From the NCBI GenBank assembly GCA_907165135.1, contig OU015566.1, positions 4,898,001 to 4,962,000 on the forward strand: a stretch of DNA of 64,000 nt, written 5' to 3'. Position numbers and translations under genes: made by a program. This DNA comes from Oikopleura dioica (lineage: Eukaryota > Animalia > Chordata). Shown here in pieces: positions 2,527-33,550 of this stretch. Every line of letters begins with the position of its first letter. Within the stretch, counting starts at the first letter, position 1. Below the pieces are notes generated by a model. That model did not search any database, had not been told where the DNA came from, and saw only the letters and a program-made list of their open reading frames with translations.

Positions 2527-4815
2527 TTATTTTTGCAAAGATTGATAAAAAGAAATTGTGTCTTCGGAAAGCTCTTTTCTCCAGCCATTCGATTTTCCTG
2601 AGCGGAAAATGACGTCTTCTTCGAATTTGATTCCTTGCTCCTTGCTGATGCTTTTTCGGTGTTCTCGAGCTTTTTTGATATCGCTCTTGAAAAAGAATGA
2701 TTGAAATCAACGAGGAAAATAGGCGATTTGTCTGGAACGAACAAAAATTTCGACGAATTTCGCACAGAAGTTTTCAACCAATAAGAAGCCTGGATTTGGT
2801 TTATCGGCCAATCAGGAGCCGAAAAGCCGCCCACGCGAAATTTGTCGAAATTTTTGTCGGTTCCAGATTTCGGCCCGAAAAATATACCTACATTTGCAAC
2901 AATTTCTGCAAGATCGGCGTTTTCAATTTCGAGAAATTTCAACAATCTCGAGATTTCTTTCGGTTTATCTGCCATTACTTCGCCAAATTTGAAAACTAAA
3001 ATCTCATTAATTTTCACCAACACTTTTCATTTTACATTCAATCTGAAGCTCCGGATGATCTTCAGCAAACTCCCTCCACTGTTTGTTGTATTCTTCTGAC
3101 GATCCCCAGTAATGTTTTCCCTCGAACATGAATCTGGCGAATTTCTGTAGGTCCTCGTTGATTCCGTACTTTTTGAGGTACGGGCGCATCGATGGAAGTT
3201 TCTTCAGATAATGGTATGCTGAGACGACAACAGCGGGAGTTGCGCGCTCGACGAAGACGATTTTGCCTTTGTGGCCGAGCGGAAAGTTGCTTGGGTAGAG
3301 GTGGCAATGATTTGTGTGGACAAGGCCTTCGTATTGACGAATCGCGGCGAGTTGCTGGTCCAAGGAGTTGACGACCTAGTTTAATTGTTGATCACGGTCA
3401 GATAAAAAAATTTGTCCGAAAGCGCCCTAATTACGATGTCCTAGGGTGAGGTTCAGGAGGTGTGACCGAATTGGAAAGTTTTTTTGAATAAATGAATGTT
3501 GGAATCTTACTGTATCTTTCAGTCCCAGCGTTTCCAGTCGTCTGATCCCAATTGCATCCAAAATCGACATCATCAAGTGACTTCCTGACTTTGGATAGCC
3601 TTAAAAATATCTATCAACCATTTCCGCCATCAACTCTTACCAACTACAGTAACGGCGTTTTCAGGAAAAACTATCTTCCTGATCTTTTCCAAGGCCTCCT
3701 TGGAAGCGACCAGGGCTCTAAATGGATTAGTCCGGGCTCGGACTTAGTCCGAAGTCCGTCCGGTCTAGTCCGGCCGGACGGACCAGACTTCTGATTTTTG
3801 GCTGAGAAAATTTTCGGACTAGACCAGACCAGACTTGGCTTTGTCCCCGGACTTAGTCCGAAAAGTCCGAAAAAGCTGGACCACTTTCAGACTTATGTTT
3901 TAGTCCGAAAAGTCCGAGAAGTCCGAGAAAGTCCGAGAAGACTTGACCACTTCCGGACTACTTAGAGACTTATTTTCAGACCAATTAAGTCCGAAAAAGT
4001 CCGAAAAGTCTTCATTTTTCTAAGAAAAACTCATTTCTCTCTAGAACCCCCTTATTCTTATGATTTTTTTCTTCAACAATGCATCGTTGGGGGCCCGGAC
4101 TATGTCGTCGAATGTCGTCGAATGTCGTCAATGTCGTCGAATGTCGTCAATGTCGTCGAATGTCGTCAGATTTTTTTCAAAAACGGAAAAAAAACCAAAT
4201 ACGAAAATTTTACATGATTTTGCTCAATAAATTTTCGAAAAAAGTTCGAATCTTCGTTGTTAAATGACTGATGAGTAAGTTACGATTTTTCTAATTCGAA
4301 TTTATTTCGAAAATAATACCAAAGTTTTTCTTAATTAAGGACCCCCCCCGTCAGCTTTTTCCTTCGAAATATTGAAATTTTTAAAAACGAGTTTCTGTTG
4401 TATTTTATTCAAAAAATTTTCGGACTTTTCCGGACTAGACCAGACCAGACCGGATTTTTCGGCTTTTTTCTCGGACCAGACTTTTTCGGACTTTTTCGGA
4501 CTTTTCCCGGACTAGACCAGACTTAAAGTCCGGGTTTTCCAATCCGGACCTGGACAGACCAGACTTGTAAATTTCGGCCAAGTGCCCGGACCTGGACAGA
4601 CCGGACTTTTGATTTTTGCCTCAGATTTAGAGCCCTGGAAGCGACTTGAGAGTTGAGCGGCAAGCAGACTTCAAGAGAATTTTCTAATGACCCCTTTTTG
4701 TAAAAAGCGCCATTGTATTCGATGATGTCGCCAGTTTCAAGTTCTTTTTCGTAGAATTTTTTCGTGCGTCGAAATCAAGAGTCGTTGGCTCGTTGTTGTT
4801 ATCTTTGATTATCAT
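2527..4815 (-). CDS. Sulfotransferase copy 2 (tandem paralog), interrupted by a hAT MITE, with a -1 frameshift in an A6 run (~4757-4762)
   Basis: MIIKDNNNEPTTLDFDARK / FYEKELETGDIIEYNGAFY (4815-4700) aligns with copy 1. ORFs 3007-3363 and 2481-3023 match copy 1. C-terminus IFRSGKSNGWRKELSEDTISFYQSLQK*. Confidence 0.78.
2731..2867. mobile_element. MITE family A copy in last SULT2 intron
   Basis: TCTGGAAC...GTTCCAGA ends, same internal sequence as 196-335. Confidence 0.75.
3711..4637. mobile_element. Non-autonomous hAT-type element, 927 bp
   Basis: TIR CAGGGCTCTAAAT / ATTTAGAGCCCTG; perfect 8-bp TSD GAAGCGAC (3703-3710, 4638-4645); dense subterminal AGTCCG/CGGACT repeats; no transposase ORF. 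Confidence 0.92.
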
Positions 4816-11099: not shown

Positions 11100-11539
11100 T
11101 TTTTATAAAGAGAACTTTATTATCTGATTCATCGTTTTTGAAATTACCCGGACTTTTGTTTGAAAAAGTGCAGTTCTTATCTTTTCGTTTTCTTCTTCGA
11201 TCGCCATGGCGAGTGCTCTCTGGAAAAAAAACAACGATTCTGAAGATAGAAAAGGTGAAAAGCCGGTTTGTGGGACTCCTCGGCACGACTTCCTCGACAG
11301 CGCAGTCTCCGATCTTCCTCTTTTTGAGTGTCGCTTCCTCTGCTTCACCTTTACCAGCGCTGACAACAAAGCTAGTGGGACTACGAGTGTCTGGAAGGGA
11401 TTTTTTGAACTTCATTCGAACAAAAAAAATAACCGGTAGACTACGTCTTTATAAATAATTAATAACAGGTTCCCAAAAATATGAAGAATGTCACATTCTG
11501 AATGTGGGTATCATTGAGGGATTTTTTAAGTAACATGTA

Positions 11540-11714
11540 CACTCGTGTGAGGAGTTTCCGCACCCCTAGACAGCGGGTAAAGGGCGCGGAAACGCAGCAC
11601 TCATTTTTGCCACTTCTAGAAGAAAACAATAGAAAAAGTGCGGGTCAGGGGTGCGGAAACGCAGCACTCACAAAGGGTGCGGAAACTCCTCACAGTGTGA
11701 GGCTCACACCACTG
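11540..11714. mobile_element. Tc1/mariner-type MITE, short form, TA TSD
   Basis: TA|CA(C/G)T(C/G)GTGTGAGGAGTTTCCGCACC...CTCACACCACTG|TA; same TIR as 30728-31444. Confidence 0.8.
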
Positions 11715-26672: not shown

Positions 26673-27186
26673 TTTCATGCAGTCAATAAAATCACCCTCT
26701 GCAAAATTTATCCTCAAGAGTTTAGGAAACTAGAATCTACTAGGTAGATAAGGTTGTCAAAGCAATCGTCTACTACATCAGCCTATTAATCATTTTTCAA
26801 AATTTGCGACGAAAAATGCTTCCCAGATTACAAAAAATTCGACTGATTTATGGTTTTTAAAAATGAAGTAGTCTTGTATGAAAAATTTGTTAAATTCGAT
26901 CCAAAACCCATAATTATCAATATTCGTGAAATATGGAGTTTCGACTGATTTTTTCATGATATTTTTTTATTAAGACAAAGTAAATTTGAAGTGCTTTGAA
27001 AAATATTCTACGTCTGGAATTATCTCGCGAATTTCTCAACTTCTCGCGAGGTAAATAAATCTTCACATATAAAATCAACTTCACAAGCATTTTTCTCATT
27101 CCTCAGTGCGAAAATAAAAAAATTGCAAAACTTTTCTTCACACTATTTTTCATTCTGCCGGCTAATTCGCAAGAGATTTCTTCGAG

Positions 27187-29668
27187 ATGCTTTCCTTTTG
27201 GTTAGCATCAGCTTTTCTCCGTCTCGGCTGGGCCCAGATAACATGCGATAATGAGAACTGCCCGAACCCGACCGGAACTTCTTACGAGACGAAATTGAAT
27301 TGCGGCGTTTTGGTCAACGATGGAACCAATGGACAGTCGAAAAAGTGCGCGTATTTGATGAAAACGAGGGAGAATGGCCGGAGTCGAACGCTTTTTGCTC
27401 TGCGCTAAAATTTACAATCAACGGAACGGAAGTCGAGGGAGGAAATATGCTGTCAATCAGATCGCCTGAAGAAAATGAAGTCATCAGACAGTACCTCATC
27501 GGACTCATGGACGGAGCAAACGTCTACTACTATCCCCGAATCGGGCTTCGAAAAACATGCCAAAACTGCGAGTGGTACTGGTCCGACGGGAGTCCAATTA
27601 CTTACACCAATTGGTACGGAACCGAGCCAAATACCTACTACTACGATTGCGCCAGAATCTAGTAAGTCGTTCTTGAAATCTTCGCTAAATAAAAATTCTA
27701 GTTATTCGAGCAACGGCGCTGTTTACAACGGAACTTGGATAGACATAACCTGCACGGGAATCTACTCAGATCTGTGCCAATTCGAAGTCGATGGAAAACA
27801 ACCTTGGGATCCAGAGCCAGACAATGGTCTACCCGCCAAAGGAGGTTGCAAACCCGGCTGGTACCCCTTCGGCGGCTACTGCTACAAATTCGACGGTTTT
27901 CGGGTCGATGGCGGATCAGGTTTCGACCCAGCTGGATTTTTGAAGTGGAATGATGCGCGAGCAAAATGCAACGAGGACTGGGAAGGAGCTGATTTGGCCA
28001 TGCTTCCGACAGCAGAGCACAATTCTCTGGTCGCATCGCTACTTGGGCCGTGGTTTTTCGGGGCGGATCCGTTTATCGGAGTTTACAATCATGCTTATTA
28101 TGATTATTACTTCAGGTTTTAGCTCTCCTCTTTGACCCCTAATCGAATATTCTTGCTAGTCTGATCAACGAAGACCGCCTCAAATACGACAACTGGGTGC
28201 CCGGCAAGCCCAATCACGCCCAAAGTACCCAAGACAAATGCGTCGTCATGTCCTGGCGAAACGACGCAAATTTCCACGATGCTTTCCGAGTTGGTCAATG
28301 GAACAACGTCTACTGCGGCACTTACGCAACCGCTGGCAATTATGGCGATCCCCACCCGTGGGTTTGCTCGCACGAACAGAGTTCTAGCTATCAGTCGCAG
28401 TACCCGACTTGGATTTCGCTGCCCGATGTGAAATGCGGTCCCGGTTGGATTCCTTACCATTCTGCTTGCTACAAGGTTTTTGTTTCTTTATCATTTCTTG
28501 ATTCAATCATTGTTGTTTTCAGCTATTTACTGATCGAAAACCCTTCGATGATGCAAACAAATATTGTTCGGAAAATGGCGAGTCGGCAGCAAAAGCAACC
28601 TATTTGATCACAATGTGGGACGAGTACGAAGTCGAGTTTGCCAAATCCTTCTTCCGGGACGATCAACTCCCGCAGCGAAAGCCAACAGATCTGCCAGACG
28701 GTATCTGGATCGGTCTCAAGAAAAAGTAAGCACAAGAAGTTTGATTTTTGGAATTCCTCTTTTAAGTGATCGGCAAGGAAGCGACAGATTCGAATGGATC
28801 GATGGAGTGCCACTGACGCGTCAAGATTGGGCTGGCGACTCTGGAAATCAGCCCTGCGCGTTTTGGACTCGGAGACGAAAATGTACAAGACCTCCGGCTG
28901 CTCCGAGCAAAAGCGTTCATTTGCAAAAGCGAGTTCTACGAGGTCCCGCTCAACTCATACGAAGACATCGATGCAAAGCTCGGGAAGCCTCAGGAATGCC
29001 CCGATGGTTGGAGCCTCCTCGGCCACCACTGCACGAGAATCTACGAGGAGGCGCAGCCGTATTCACAAGCCGCCATGCAATGCAAAATCCAAGGCGGCAA
29101 TCTCGGCAGCATCCACTCCTCCGGCTACAACAGAATCATAAAAGACCAGTTCACGAAAACTGCCCACGCCGAAAACTCGATGTGGATCGGAATGCAGTAC
29201 AAAGGCGCTTTCGGCTGGCAGTGGGACGATGGAACAGGCGCCAGCTATTTTAACTGGGAAAATGGGGAGCCGAATGATTGGCAAGAGCCGGAAGATTGCG
29301 TGGCGATGGATGAGATTGGCACTTGGAAGGACTCGCCGTGTCGGGAATCGAAACCGTTCCTCTGCAAAAAGGTCGCTCCGACTGAATTTTGCACTGCCGC
29401 GATTTCGAGCAAAATCAAGTCTTGTGGATTCGTCGGCATTTCGGAGACAGAGTGCATGTTGGAATTCGGATGCTGTTTCGACCCAACAATCGACTCGGGC
29501 ATGGGCAACAACTGTTTCCAACCAAAGCCTCCGGTCGACGTCGGCATGGCCGCAGGCGCTGCTGTCGGCGTCACCGTCTTTGTCATTGCCGCTGTTGCTG
29601 GAGGATTCTTTTTCTACACGAAGAGAAATGAAGCCACTATCGGCGGCATTACCAATCCTCTTGCTTGA
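27187..29668 (+). CDS. Type I membrane receptor: 4 C-type lectin domains + trefoil (P-type) domain + TM, copy 1 (three 1-nt frameshifts)
   Basis: WIGL/WIGM and EPN motifs, WND/WKD, CxxGW starts; CGFVGISETECMLEFGCCFD trefoil; TM AAGAAVGVTVFVIAAVAGGFFFY; tail GGITNPLA*. Confidence 0.88.
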
Positions 29669-29875
29669 ACTTTTTCTTTATTTTATTTTCCTTACTTTCT
29701 TCTGCAATAAAAATCTCAAGGCGAGTTAAAACAAGCACAATTGAAATTAATTGATCATGGGCTATTCCTCCATGATTTCATGCAGTCAATAAAATCACCC
29801 TTAGCACCTGTTATTCTAGAATCATTTTTTGACAACTAGTTTTGTCAAAAGCAGAAAACAGTATCAGTTTGAAAA

Positions 29876-32800
29876 ATGTCAGTTTCGGGAAACCAAGCAG
29901 CCCAAAATTATCCATCGTCTTCTATTATAAAAATTCCGATTGAAGAGGATTATACAGGTAAAAAAGAAGATAATTTAATGAGGCTTATTTCTCTCTCTCA
30001 AGCAAAGAATAAGCAACATGGCTCGACTGAAGCGCCAAAGCCGTCTTCTTCTGCAATGGGTGGTCTTTGCAGTGGTCTCGAAGGAGTTGGCCTCATTTTA
30101 AAAGGCCTCATTTTAAAAGGCCTCATCTTAAAAGGCTTCATTTTAAAACAGTTTAAAATGAGGCCTTTTAAAATGAAGCCTTTTTAAAATGAGGCCTATT
30201 TATTTAAAAAGAGGCCAAAAATTCCGAATCGGCTGAAACTGCTTTGTTGATTTTATGTTTGAACTTCATAAGCTCACTTGGCAAGTAATCGAAAAAAATT
30301 TTTTGGATAATCAATGATAAGTAATCATATCTCCACCCTTTTCTCCTTGATCAGGGTTCTAAATTTGTGGTAAAATCTAAAAGTCTTATCCGTCCGTGTC
30401 CGGATCGAAAAACGGATTTTTATCCGGTCTTGTCCCGGACATGTCCGTTTTAGTCCGTTCCTGTCAGTAAAATCCGGCCATATTTTTGTAAGAAAAAGTC
30501 TGGTCATGACCGTAAATGTCCGTAAAATTCTATGCAAAAAAACAAATTTTTATCGAAATAAGCCCTAAGAGTCTCGAGCCAAGACCAAAAAATCTTTAAG
30601 AAATAAATTCGACAGAAATTTCATCGAAAAATCGAATTCTACTCAAGCCAATTTTAGAAAATCAAGGGAGTGGCCTGGGACAAGAGTCGTAAGTTTCATG
30701 AGCGACTGAATTTTTCCAAAGGAGCTACAGTGGTGTGAGGAGTTTCCGCACCTCTAAAGAGCGGGTAAAGGGGTGCGCGTCATTAGCTACGGTTTGGGGG
30801 TTTGCGTCAATAGCTACGGTGCGTCAATAGCTACGGTTAAAAATGAGTCAAAGGGAGCAAGGGAATTGACAGACAGTTTAGGGTGGGCATCAACCTACCG
30901 GTCGGGTTAGGGTTAGGTCGGGTTTGCCGGTTATTTCGAAAATTACAAGAATCTGAAGCTATCTAGGTCGGTCGTAACGAGAGTGTGGTCGCTTTTCGCT
31001 TGCAAAAATTTGAATAAGTAACATAGTCGGACAATTTTTATTGAATCAAGGCTAAATATGGTATTTTTCGTATTGGTATCATTGTTTGTAAGCAAAAACG
31101 ACCACAATCTCTTTCCGACCAACCTAGATAGATTCAAATTCTTGTAATTTTCGAAATAACCGGCAAACCCGACCTAGGTTGATGCCCACCCTAAACGTTC
31201 TGTCAATTCCCATGCTCCCTTTGACTCATTTTTAGCCGTAGCTATTGACGCACCGTAGCTTTTGACGCAAACGTAGCTACTGACGTAAACCCCCAAACCG
31301 CAGCAGTTGACGCGCACCCGGTAAAAGGTGCGGAAACGCAGCACTCACTTTTGTCACTTCTAGAAGAAATATGCAGAAAAAGTGCGGCCTAGGGGTGCGG
31401 TAACGCACCACTCACAAATGGTGCGGAAACTTCTCACACCACTGTATGCTCAGCCGAAAGACTTCATAAAATTGCTTACTTAGCTCAGCATCAGCTGGTA
31501 AAAACCAGCTCTGCTCAGAGTGGATAAAAATTAATTTGAAGAGAGAAATAAGTGAATAATTTTCTCAAGTACGAGAGGGGGCCACAACTATAATGGGCAA
31601 ATTCTTCCCGCGGCAGACAATTATTACGGGTTCAATATTCTTCCCTGGGCTCACTAAGTTAACGGGTTTCAGACTCTCAAAATGAATTGAGCGAACTCAG
31701 TTGAACTTGAAATCGGCGAACCAATTGGATTTTGTTTTGGCACTTCTAGAAAATCCAAATTACAATTCTAGAAAAACAAAGAGCAAGTTTGCCACGGGCG
31801 CTCAATTCTTTTCGAGAATCTGAAACCCGTTAACTTAGTGAGCCCAGGGAAGAATATTGAACCCGTAATAATTGTCTGCCGCGGGAAGAATTTGCCCATT
31901 ATAGTTGTGGCCCCCTCTCGTACTTGAGAAAATTATTCACTTATTTCTCTCTTCAAATTAATTTTTATCCACTCTGAGCAGAGCTGGTTTTTACCAGCTG
32001 ATGCTGAGCTAAGTAAGCAATTTTATGAAGTCTTTCGGCTGAGCATACAGTGGTGTGAGAAGTTTCCGCACCATTTGTGAGTGGTGCGTTACCGCACCCC
32101 TAGGCCGCACTTTTTCTGCATATTTCTTCTAGAAGTGACAAAGTGAGTGCTGCGTTTCCGCACCTTTACCGGGTGCGCGTCAACTGCTGCGGTTTGGGGG
32201 TTTACGTCAGTAGCTACGTTTGCGTCAATAGCTACGGTGCGTCAATAGCTACGGCTAAAAATGAGTCAAAGGGAGCATGGGAATTGACAGAACGTTTAGG
32301 GTGGGCATCAACCTAGGTCGGGTTTGCCGGTTATTTCGAAAATTACAAGAATTTGAATCTATCTAGGTTGGTCGGAAAGAGATTGTGGTCGTTTTTGCTT
32401 ACAAACAATGATACCAATACGAAAAATACCATATTTAGCCTTGATTCAATAAAAATTGTCCGACTATGTTACTTATTCAAATTTTTGCAAGCGAAAAGCG
32501 ACCACACTCTCGTTACGACCGACCTAGATAGCTTCAGATTCTTGTAATTTTCGAAATAACCGGCAAACCCGACCTAACCCTAACCCGACCGGTAGGTTGA
32601 TGCCCACCCTAAACTGTCTGTCAATTCCCTTGCTCCCTTTGACTCATTTTTAACCGTAGCTATTGACGCACCGTAGCTATTGACGCAAACCCCCAAACCG
32701 TAGCTAATGACGCGCACCCCTTTTACCCGCTCTTTAGAGGTGCGGAAACTCCTCACACCACTGTAGCTCCTTTGGAAAAATTCAGTCGCTCATGAAACTT

Positions 32801-33550
32801 ACGACTCTTGTCCCAGGCCACTCCCTTGATTTTCTAAAATTGGCTTGAGTAGAATTCGATTTTTCGATGAAATTTCTGTCGAATTTATTTCTTAAAGATT
32901 TTTTGGTCTTGGCTCGAGACTCTTAGGGCTTATTTCGATAAAAATTTGTTTTTTTGCATAGAATTTTACGGACATTTACGGTCATGACCAGACTTTTTCT
33001 TACAAAAATATGGCCGGATTTTACTGACAGGAACGGACTAAAACGGACATGTCCGGGACAAGACCGGATAAAAATCCGTTTTTCGATCCGGACACGGACG
33101 GATAAGACTTTTAGATTTTACCACAAATTTAGAACCCTGATCAAGGAGAAAAGGGTGGTGATATGATTACTTATCATTGATTATCCAAAAAAATTTTTTT
33201 CGATTACTTGCCAAGTGAGCTTATGAAGTTCAAACATAAAATCAACAAAGCAGTTTCAGCCGATTCGGAATTTTGGCCTCTTTTAAATAAATAGGCCTCA
33301 TTTTAAAAAGGCTTCATTTTAAAAGGCCTCATTTTAAACTGTTTTAAAATGAAGCCTTTTAAGATGAGGCCTTTTAAAATGAGGCCTTTTTAAAATGAGG
33401 CCAACTCGTCTCGAAGATATTCTTGAACTTTGTGGATGTCCGGAACCATGCCGAGATGTGTGCTATGGAATAGTTTGCTGTAAATGGATTCTGTTCCTTT
33501 TATTCTTCTTTGCGGTCATCTATCGATTCATGACAAAACCAGATGATTGA
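29876..33550 (+). CDS. Small (~98 aa) Cys-rich, C-terminal TM orphan protein gene split by the foldback element
   Basis: Removing the element and one TSD gives an open frame ...GGLCSGLE|DILELCGCPEPCRDVCYGIVCCKWILFLLFFFAVIYRFMTKPDD*; a 45-nt GT-AG intron sits at ~29958-30002. Confidence 0.65.
30728..31444. mobile_element. Tc1/mariner-type MITE (~717 bp, TA TSD) nested in left arm
   Basis: TA|CAGTGGTGTGAGGAG...CTCACACCACTG|TA, with its own internal inverted repeats. Confidence 0.85.
32048..32763. mobile_element. Mirror copy of the nested Tc1-type MITE in right arm
   Basis: Reverse complement of 30728-31444 at the symmetric position. Confidence 0.85.

Follow-up and report, generated by a model that had tools for sequence, protein, structure and literature searches.

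A palindromic composite transposon in Oikopleura dioica and its probable origin by foldback copying at a nested hairpin element

The annotated gene OKI2018_I69.chr1.g1321 of the chordate Oikopleura dioica is interrupted by a non-coding palindromic composite element of 3,324 bp. The locus lies in a stretch of 64,000 nucleotides (GenBank assembly GCA_907165135.1, contig OU015566.1, positions 4,898,001 to 4,962,000 of the forward strand), which is referred to here as the window and whose numbering is used throughout; the element occupies 30084-33407. It is a genuine foldback-type, single-copy, non-autonomous class II (cut-and-paste) insertion, and its two long arms carry the same series of nested transposons in mirror image. 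The 1.6-kb symmetry appears to be a secondary feature, because the termini of its relatives have inverted repeats of only ~140 bp and enclose non-symmetric interiors. The favoured reading, with a probability of about 0.65, is that the right half of the element was replaced in a single foldback or template-switch event, in which the left half was copied with a small hairpin transposon, named P here, as the pivot.

Architecture of the palindrome

The left arm (30084-31693, 1,610 bp) and the right arm (31799-33407, minus strand, 1,609 bp) are separated by a spacer of 105 bp (31694-31798), and the right arm mirrors the left including all of its nested elements. The element is flanked on both sides by an exact 9-bp target site duplication (TSD), GTCTCGAAG, at 30075-30083 and 33408-33416. 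The chance of such a match for a 9-mer at fixed ends is ~4e-6. Both structural hallmarks of the foldback class are therefore present, i.e. long inverted arms around a short spacer, and a TSD. Only five substitutions distinguish the arms (30332, 31261, 31674, 31679 and 31683). Three of them cluster beside the loop, at distances of 11, 15 and 20 bp, and the other ~1,590 bp contain the remaining two. The arms also differ by seven single-base indels, all within A/T homopolymer runs, as residual Nanopore error or slippage would typically produce. No transposase was found inside the element, where the largest open reading frames (ORFs) are 64-70 aa long, and Rfam and tRNA searches of the element gave no matches. 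This picture agrees with the first-pass annotation of the window, which had described a 3.3-kb palindrome with arms of ~1.6 kb, a 105-bp spacer, a perfect 9-bp TSD, no transposase and mismatches clustered beside the loop.

The anatomy of the arms was worked out by whole-genome searches (64.28 Mb in 19 contigs) with pieces of the arm, followed by alignment to the retrieved copies. Each arm is a four-deep nest that comprises five transposon families, here called T, H, M, Q and P. T is the host, and its own DNA is restricted to 30084-30348, the outer ~265 bp of each arm. H is a hAT-like miniature inverted-repeat transposable element (MITE) with the terminal inverted repeat (TIR) CAGGGTTCTAAAT. 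Its 5' part (30349-30725, plus strand) and its middle part (31447-31576, plus strand) lie on either side of M, a Tc1-like MITE (CAGTGGTGTGAG...CTCACACCACTG) that is flanked by TA on both sides (30726-31446, plus strand; mirror copy 32046-32765). Five genomic copies of H run uninterrupted over a single TA at the insertion site of M. Within M lies Q, a palindromic element of 549 bp (30771-31319), flanked by GGGTAAAG (30763-30770) and GGTAAAAG (31320-31327). An empty M, without Q, at 11538-11694 of the window defines the insertion site of Q and a duplication of 7-8 bp (GGTAAAG). The exact centre of the palindrome is occupied by P, a foldback MITE of ~340 bp (31577-31915). The stems of P are 31577-31693 and 31799-31915, and its loop (31694-31798) is at once the spacer and the symmetry axis of the whole palindrome. 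The mirrored Tc1-type MITE with its TA duplication and the hAT-like end had both been recognized in the first-pass annotation and were recovered here; the arms hold more nested families than it had listed.

Two minor features of the nested elements may be recorded. The two copies of the duplication beside Q differ by one A (A3 versus A4), and the mirror sites are at 32716-32724 and 32160-32167. Read in register, the left arm has A3...A4 and the right arm A4...A3, so the pattern is reciprocal between the arms, with the two copies of Q mirrored at 100%; slippage or noise from polishing may account for it. Elsewhere in the window, at 3711-4637, lies a hAT-like element of ~0.9 kb whose TIR, CAGGGCTCTAAAT, is related to that of H, as the first-pass annotation had indicated; this element has a perfect TSD of 8 bp, GAAGCGAC.

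Origin of the symmetry

H stops abruptly against P at 31576, and the five aligned genomic copies of H extend more than 300 bp beyond this position. That portion is absent in the window, where the mirror image follows instead. H meets P at the identical base on both sides, and the 3' part of H is lost in both arms. A deletion of ~40 bp in H, relative to the five other aligned copies, is likewise present in both arms. Between the two arms, H, M, Q and P are ~99-100% identical, compared with only 72-92% to copies elsewhere in the genome. Substitutions that are private to this locus recur in the opposite arm: 11 of 12 in the stem of P, and 100 of 100 in the H alignment, a count that takes in some flanking columns. 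Foldback synthesis is favoured over independent insertions because H ends exactly at P and the private changes are mirrored. An earlier suggestion that the nested insertions had been copied from arm to arm, by conversion or foldback synthesis, is thus upheld as far as copying as a unit is concerned, and is narrowed to foldback synthesis as the preferred route.

P constitutes a foldback family of its own. The five other copies of P are 88-92% identical, and each forms a palindrome of 300-370 bp with non-symmetric flanks; two of them are truncated at one end. Among ten other P or Q copies tested, none had seeded an extended palindrome. In the other P copies the differences between the two halves are spread over the whole stem, with the exception of one fairly symmetric copy (L046). 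In the element described here they are found only 11, 15 and 20 bp from the loop, within the last 20 bp of the old stem. The difference at 15 bp is old P sequence and not a new mutation, because every P copy has the same asymmetry.

A course of events can be proposed on this basis. A non-palindromic ancestor would have gathered insertions in order: H, then M in H, then Q in M, and also P in H. A break or a stalled fork to the right of P would have allowed a 3' end to snap back on the P hairpin, with pairing limited to the ~20 bp of the stem that adjoin the loop. DNA synthesis outward from this point would then have copied the entire left side and replaced the right half. The small substitution difference between the arms (~0.13%) would date this event. 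A second step would be needed because the copy stops precisely at the transposon terminus, beside the TSD. Either the copied terminus annealed to the resident right TIR, in which case the palindrome would have formed in place, or a two-ended palindrome formed elsewhere and later transposed into g1321.

Foldback priming of this kind has been described in yeast, where natural inverted repeats near a double-strand break (DSB) give rise to inverted duplications (PMC10622511). In both cases a short inverted repeat would serve as the pivot, fill-in would produce a long perfect palindrome, and the spacer would be the original loop. Unlike the yeast product, which is a hairpin-capped or dicentric chromosome, the product here is a 3.3-kb element that ends at a transposon terminus. 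Transposons of the foldback or long-TIR type are already known, as are inverted duplications primed by foldback. The value of the present locus is that it is an unusually legible record of the origin event: a long-armed foldback transposon that would derive from an ordinary element with short TIRs in a single event. A small nested hairpin MITE would have served as pivot, and one whole side, with its four other nested transposons, would have been copied to the other. Foldback priming at DSBs, a pathway known in yeast and in cancer genomes, may thereby be tied to the structural evolution of transposons in a very compact chordate genome.

Several points weigh against this origin. The interior of the palindrome is known from the assembly alone. 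The element is single-copy and no donor or sister palindrome was found, so that its mobility as a palindrome is hypothetical. The near-symmetry of the P copy L046 makes symmetry within P weak evidence when taken by itself. Three of the seven homopolymer indels fall within the outer 140 bp, so that the right TIR may be original or the indels may be sequencing noise. Ongoing arm-to-arm conversion could equally have kept the arms identical after the event that produced them, and it may contribute to the ~0.13% figure without explaining the truncated H.

An alternative in which conversion does all the work is unlikely. According to this scenario, the element was a long-armed foldback transposon from the start; nested MITEs inserted into one arm, and recurrent gene conversion between the arms carried them across. 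Such a history would account for arms that are ~99.9% identical in substitutions while their nested copies are 8-28% diverged from relatives elsewhere. However, conversion of a complete insertion would yield a complete H, whereas on both sides the 3' part of H is missing and the junction with P falls at the same base. The relatives of the host element also have short TIRs and asymmetric interiors, and the spacer corresponds to the loop of a MITE family in its own right. It is highly improbable that the mirrored right half was made by a chimeric foldback Nanopore read or by repeat polishing, even though the assembly is Nanopore-based and was polished with Illumina reads derived from whole-genome amplification (PMC8008620), all seven arm indels are homopolymer length differences and the natural hairpin at the axis could also snap back in vitro: a snap-back read would have mirrored the left flank too, but the right side closes with a regular terminus and an exact TSD of 9 bp, followed by unique sequence that carries on the g1321 frame, an overlap assembly would not be mis-joined by a TIR of only 140 bp, and the OKI2018_I69 Nanopore library was unamplified, only the polishing reads being amplification-derived (PMC8008620). 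Foldback copying around P remains the preferred explanation.

The host element and its relatives

The left terminus of T (30084-30223, plus strand; mirrored at 33268-33407) begins with GAGTTGGCC. A 15-bp unit, GGCCTCATTTTAAAA, occurs four times in direct orientation (30089-30148) and then about three times inverted (30152-30202). The other end of the element carries a 15-bp array of equal layout; tandem subterminal repeats had been named in the first-pass annotation as typical of Mutator and Foldback elements. These arrays cover only ~135 bp per end. They are followed by 125 bp of T-specific subterminal DNA (30224-30348, plus strand) that has no other genomic copy and is mirrored in this element, whereas the interiors of relatives are non-symmetric; the remainder of the arm is made up of nested H, M, Q and P.

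The ends of T belong to a small family with ~140-bp TIRs composed of 15-17-bp subterminal repeats and with TSDs of 8-9 bp. A search for pairs of the subterminal motif returned 65, versus 1 for the reversed control. Three solo remnants carry the TTTT-type repeat. About six elements, 0.98-2.0 kb long, form a sister family (GGTATGGCATCATTATAAAG...); in the members examined, the TIRs are ~140 bp long with an internal layout like that of the T terminus, and the interiors are non-palindromic. Two of them have clean 8-bp TSDs, TTTTTGGG and CGAGCGGA. The exact terminus GAGTTGGCCTCATTTTAAAAGGCC was found genome-wide in this element only, which is therefore single-copy. The genome-wide search for termini with 9-bp TSDs that had been proposed as a check thus returned no further copy with the exact terminus, and the closest relatives make 8-bp duplications. 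With a unique terminus and relatives that are not palindromic, the element does not represent a dispersed family of identical palindromic architecture.

Two further observations were made on these ends. The ~140-bp terminus (30084-30215, and the sister TIRs in L021 and L023) has the layout of a small hairpin, with about four direct subrepeats, a turn of 3-4 nt and three to four inverted subrepeats, so the transposon ends could fold unaided. Two near-identical sister-family elements of 1,604 bp, L023 (G000:C4:2189850-2191453) and L024 (G000:C4:2204289-2205892), lie 14.4 kb apart and have common flanks and a common 8-bp TSD, which indicates a segmental duplication and not two insertions.

Among the superfamilies considered, Mutator appears to fit best in view of the 8-9-bp TSDs and the long structured TIRs. 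Mutator elements typically have a TSD of ~9 bp (8-11 bp), compared with 9 bp here and 8 bp in the two sister-family elements, and long TIRs (~100 bp or more) with subterminal repeats, compared with the ~140-bp structured TIRs found here. The hAT superfamily fits less well: it calls for an 8-bp TSD, the duplication here is 9 bp, and no 8-bp reading suits both ends, although the sister-family elements do have 8 bp. The Merlin or IS1595-like family makes TSDs of 8-9 bp, and zero matches to PF12762 (DDE_Tnp_IS1595) were found in the whole genome. ORFs of 541-596 aa with a MULE domain and several hAT copies are present in the genome. The T-type subterminal motif was found neither within 3.2-kb loci around these MULE and hAT ORFs nor near their coordinates genome-wide. 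The link to Mutator or Foldback elements drawn in the first-pass annotation consequently stands with respect to the 9-bp TSD and the subterminal repeats; membership is not established, given the 8-bp TSDs of the relatives, the lack of a MULE or hAT ORF next to such termini in the loci searched, and the single copy. The element is probably immobile today, because no matching transposase gene was found. As a separate observation, the MULE-domain matches lie in long open frames (541-596 aa; G000:C1:5821086, C5:10116858 and C2:8822519), which suggests that this compact genome has Mutator-type transposase genes that are either intact or domesticated.

The TSD of Galileo is 7 bp, unlike the 9 bp found here and the 8 bp of the relatives. 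In other respects the element resembles Drosophila FB and Galileo, Kepler and Newton of the P superfamily: long inverted arms surround a short spacer, the insertion has a TSD, and the sequence is non-coding (PMC4168063). Tandem subrepeats at the ends are another common feature. In classical Drosophila FB, however, the arms consist largely of tandem subrepeats, which are restricted to the outer ~135 bp in this element, where the rest of the arm is foreign nested transposons. The element also differs from this group in being single-copy with short-TIR relatives, so that its long arms would be a secondary, one-off product. Structural variants of long-TIR transposons such as Galileo have been attributed to aberrant gap repair and template switching (PMC4168063).

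The interrupted gene and possible RNA products

The gene model g1321 was predicted by AUGUSTUS with RNA-seq hints. Up to the insertion it covers 29876-30083 (plus strand), with exon 1 at 29876-29957, a canonical GT..AG intron of 45 nt (29958-30002) and exon 2 from 30003. The public model of 88 aa reads into the terminal repeats of the element to a stop at 30185-30187, and its last 34 residues are transposon-encoded; the locus thereby flags a public gene model whose C-terminus is supplied by a transposon. Beyond the insertion, the frame continues at 33417-33550 (plus strand) for 44 codons to a TGA at 33548-33550, and this part encodes a Cys-rich hydrophobic tail. The frame that matches g1321 is the only open one of three; an open stretch of 44 codons is expected by chance in ~16% of cases in the window. 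The insertion interrupts the coding sequence (CDS) of g1321, and the gene would have lost this hydrophobic C-terminal tail. The element is most likely a now-immobile insertion that truncates g1321.

The two halves of the interrupted ORF were used separately in the searches, and the continuity of the frame was checked by coordinates. In the genome, the search for an empty site turned up no paralogue of either half. A protein search with the left half gave a single match, Oidioi.mRNA.OKI2018_I69.chr1.g1321.t1, i.e. the model itself, and no Pfam domain was found in g1321. The coding exon into which the element had been said to insert would accordingly be an annotated but unverified orphan CDS; its interruption is upheld, and the gene is an orphan AUGUSTUS model separate from the neighbouring lectin gene.

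Splicing might explain how g1321 tolerates the insertion, although this is very unlikely: the element would be excised from the transcript as a GA-AG intron, with the hairpin bringing both sites together. The element begins with GA at 30084 and the TSD ends with AG at 33416. Since these dinucleotides bound the element plus one TSD copy, removal of 30084-33416 would, on paper, restore the pre-insertion frame exactly. O. dioica has unusually many GA-AG introns (PMC7072748), and MITE-derived non-canonical introns have been described in the larvacean Fritillaria (PMC11282704). The 45-nt intron of g1321 likewise uses an AAG acceptor, and the frame stays open for 44 codons past the element although the family looks old. 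In the RNA-seq-hinted public model, on the other hand, the element is not removed: the frame runs into it and meets a stop there. The putative donor site, AG|GAGTTG, has no conserved A after GA, and there is neither a polypyrimidine tract nor a YAG acceptor. The open frame may be fortuitous, given the ~16% mentioned above, and a single-copy element is not an introner family.

The MITE-derived or introner introns of Micromonas and Fritillaria borealis (PMC11282704) offer a comparison. In each case an element with TIRs and a TSD lies within a CDS, and the two splice dinucleotides could be contributed by an end of the element and by the TSD, respectively. Unlike the introners, the element here is single-copy, measures 3.3 kb against a median intron of 49 bp and has weak splice contexts, and its splicing would be hypothetical.

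Read-through transcription would have another consequence. The central 991 nt are predicted to fold with -892 kcal/mol (z about -99), and 301 of 1,695 arm 21-mers occur exactly in other retrieved transposable element (TE) copies, mostly of Q and P. Knock-down triggered by double-stranded RNA (dsRNA), i.e. RNA interference (RNAi), works in O. dioica (PMC5345011). A dsRNA or small-RNA product is physically plausible in view of the high stability of the hairpin, the 21-mers in common with other TEs and the operation of RNAi in this species. A precedent is Mu killer of maize, in which an inverted duplication of MuDR gives a hairpin RNA that silences Mutator (10.1101/2020.01.09.900282). Both loci are natural inverted TE duplications from which read-through could yield a long hairpin that shares sequence with other elements. 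Unlike Mu killer, the shared sequences here are non-coding MITEs of 72-92% identity with no autonomous transposase gene, and the hairpin is known from its sequence alone.

Taken together, it is quite unlikely that the element serves either as a 3.3-kb GA-AG intron or as a source of read-through RNA that is diced into small RNAs acting on Q, P, H and M. If the former were true, a transposon-made intron would have been caught in a chordate; if the latter, the Q, P, H and M families would be acted upon as Mutator is by Mu killer in maize. The locus provides a concrete place to ask whether the permissive splicing or the RNAi machinery of O. dioica handles such insertions.

Upstream of g1321 lies a gene of which the interrupted ORF might have been the last exon. 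This assignment was rejected. The ORF of the gene, which encodes a lectin, stops at 29668, as does that of its homologue P0061 (51% identical), the paralogue homology ends at ~29733, and the interrupted ORF is the separate model g1321. An exhaustive protein search returned mostly multi-CTLD proteins, P0061 being the single useful match. The lectin protein (29075-29668 of the window) has a C-type lectin domain and a trefoil (P-type) domain, both assigned by Pfam, followed by a transmembrane segment and a short tail, ...ITNPLA, which resembles the NPxY-like tails of the multi-CTLD receptor matches. Over 27100-29733 of the window, the lectin/trefoil/transmembrane gene has an inverted paralogue at 62203-59502 (minus strand), ~30 kb away and ~92% identical. 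Homology between the two stops ~65 bp past the lectin stop codon, just ahead of g1321.

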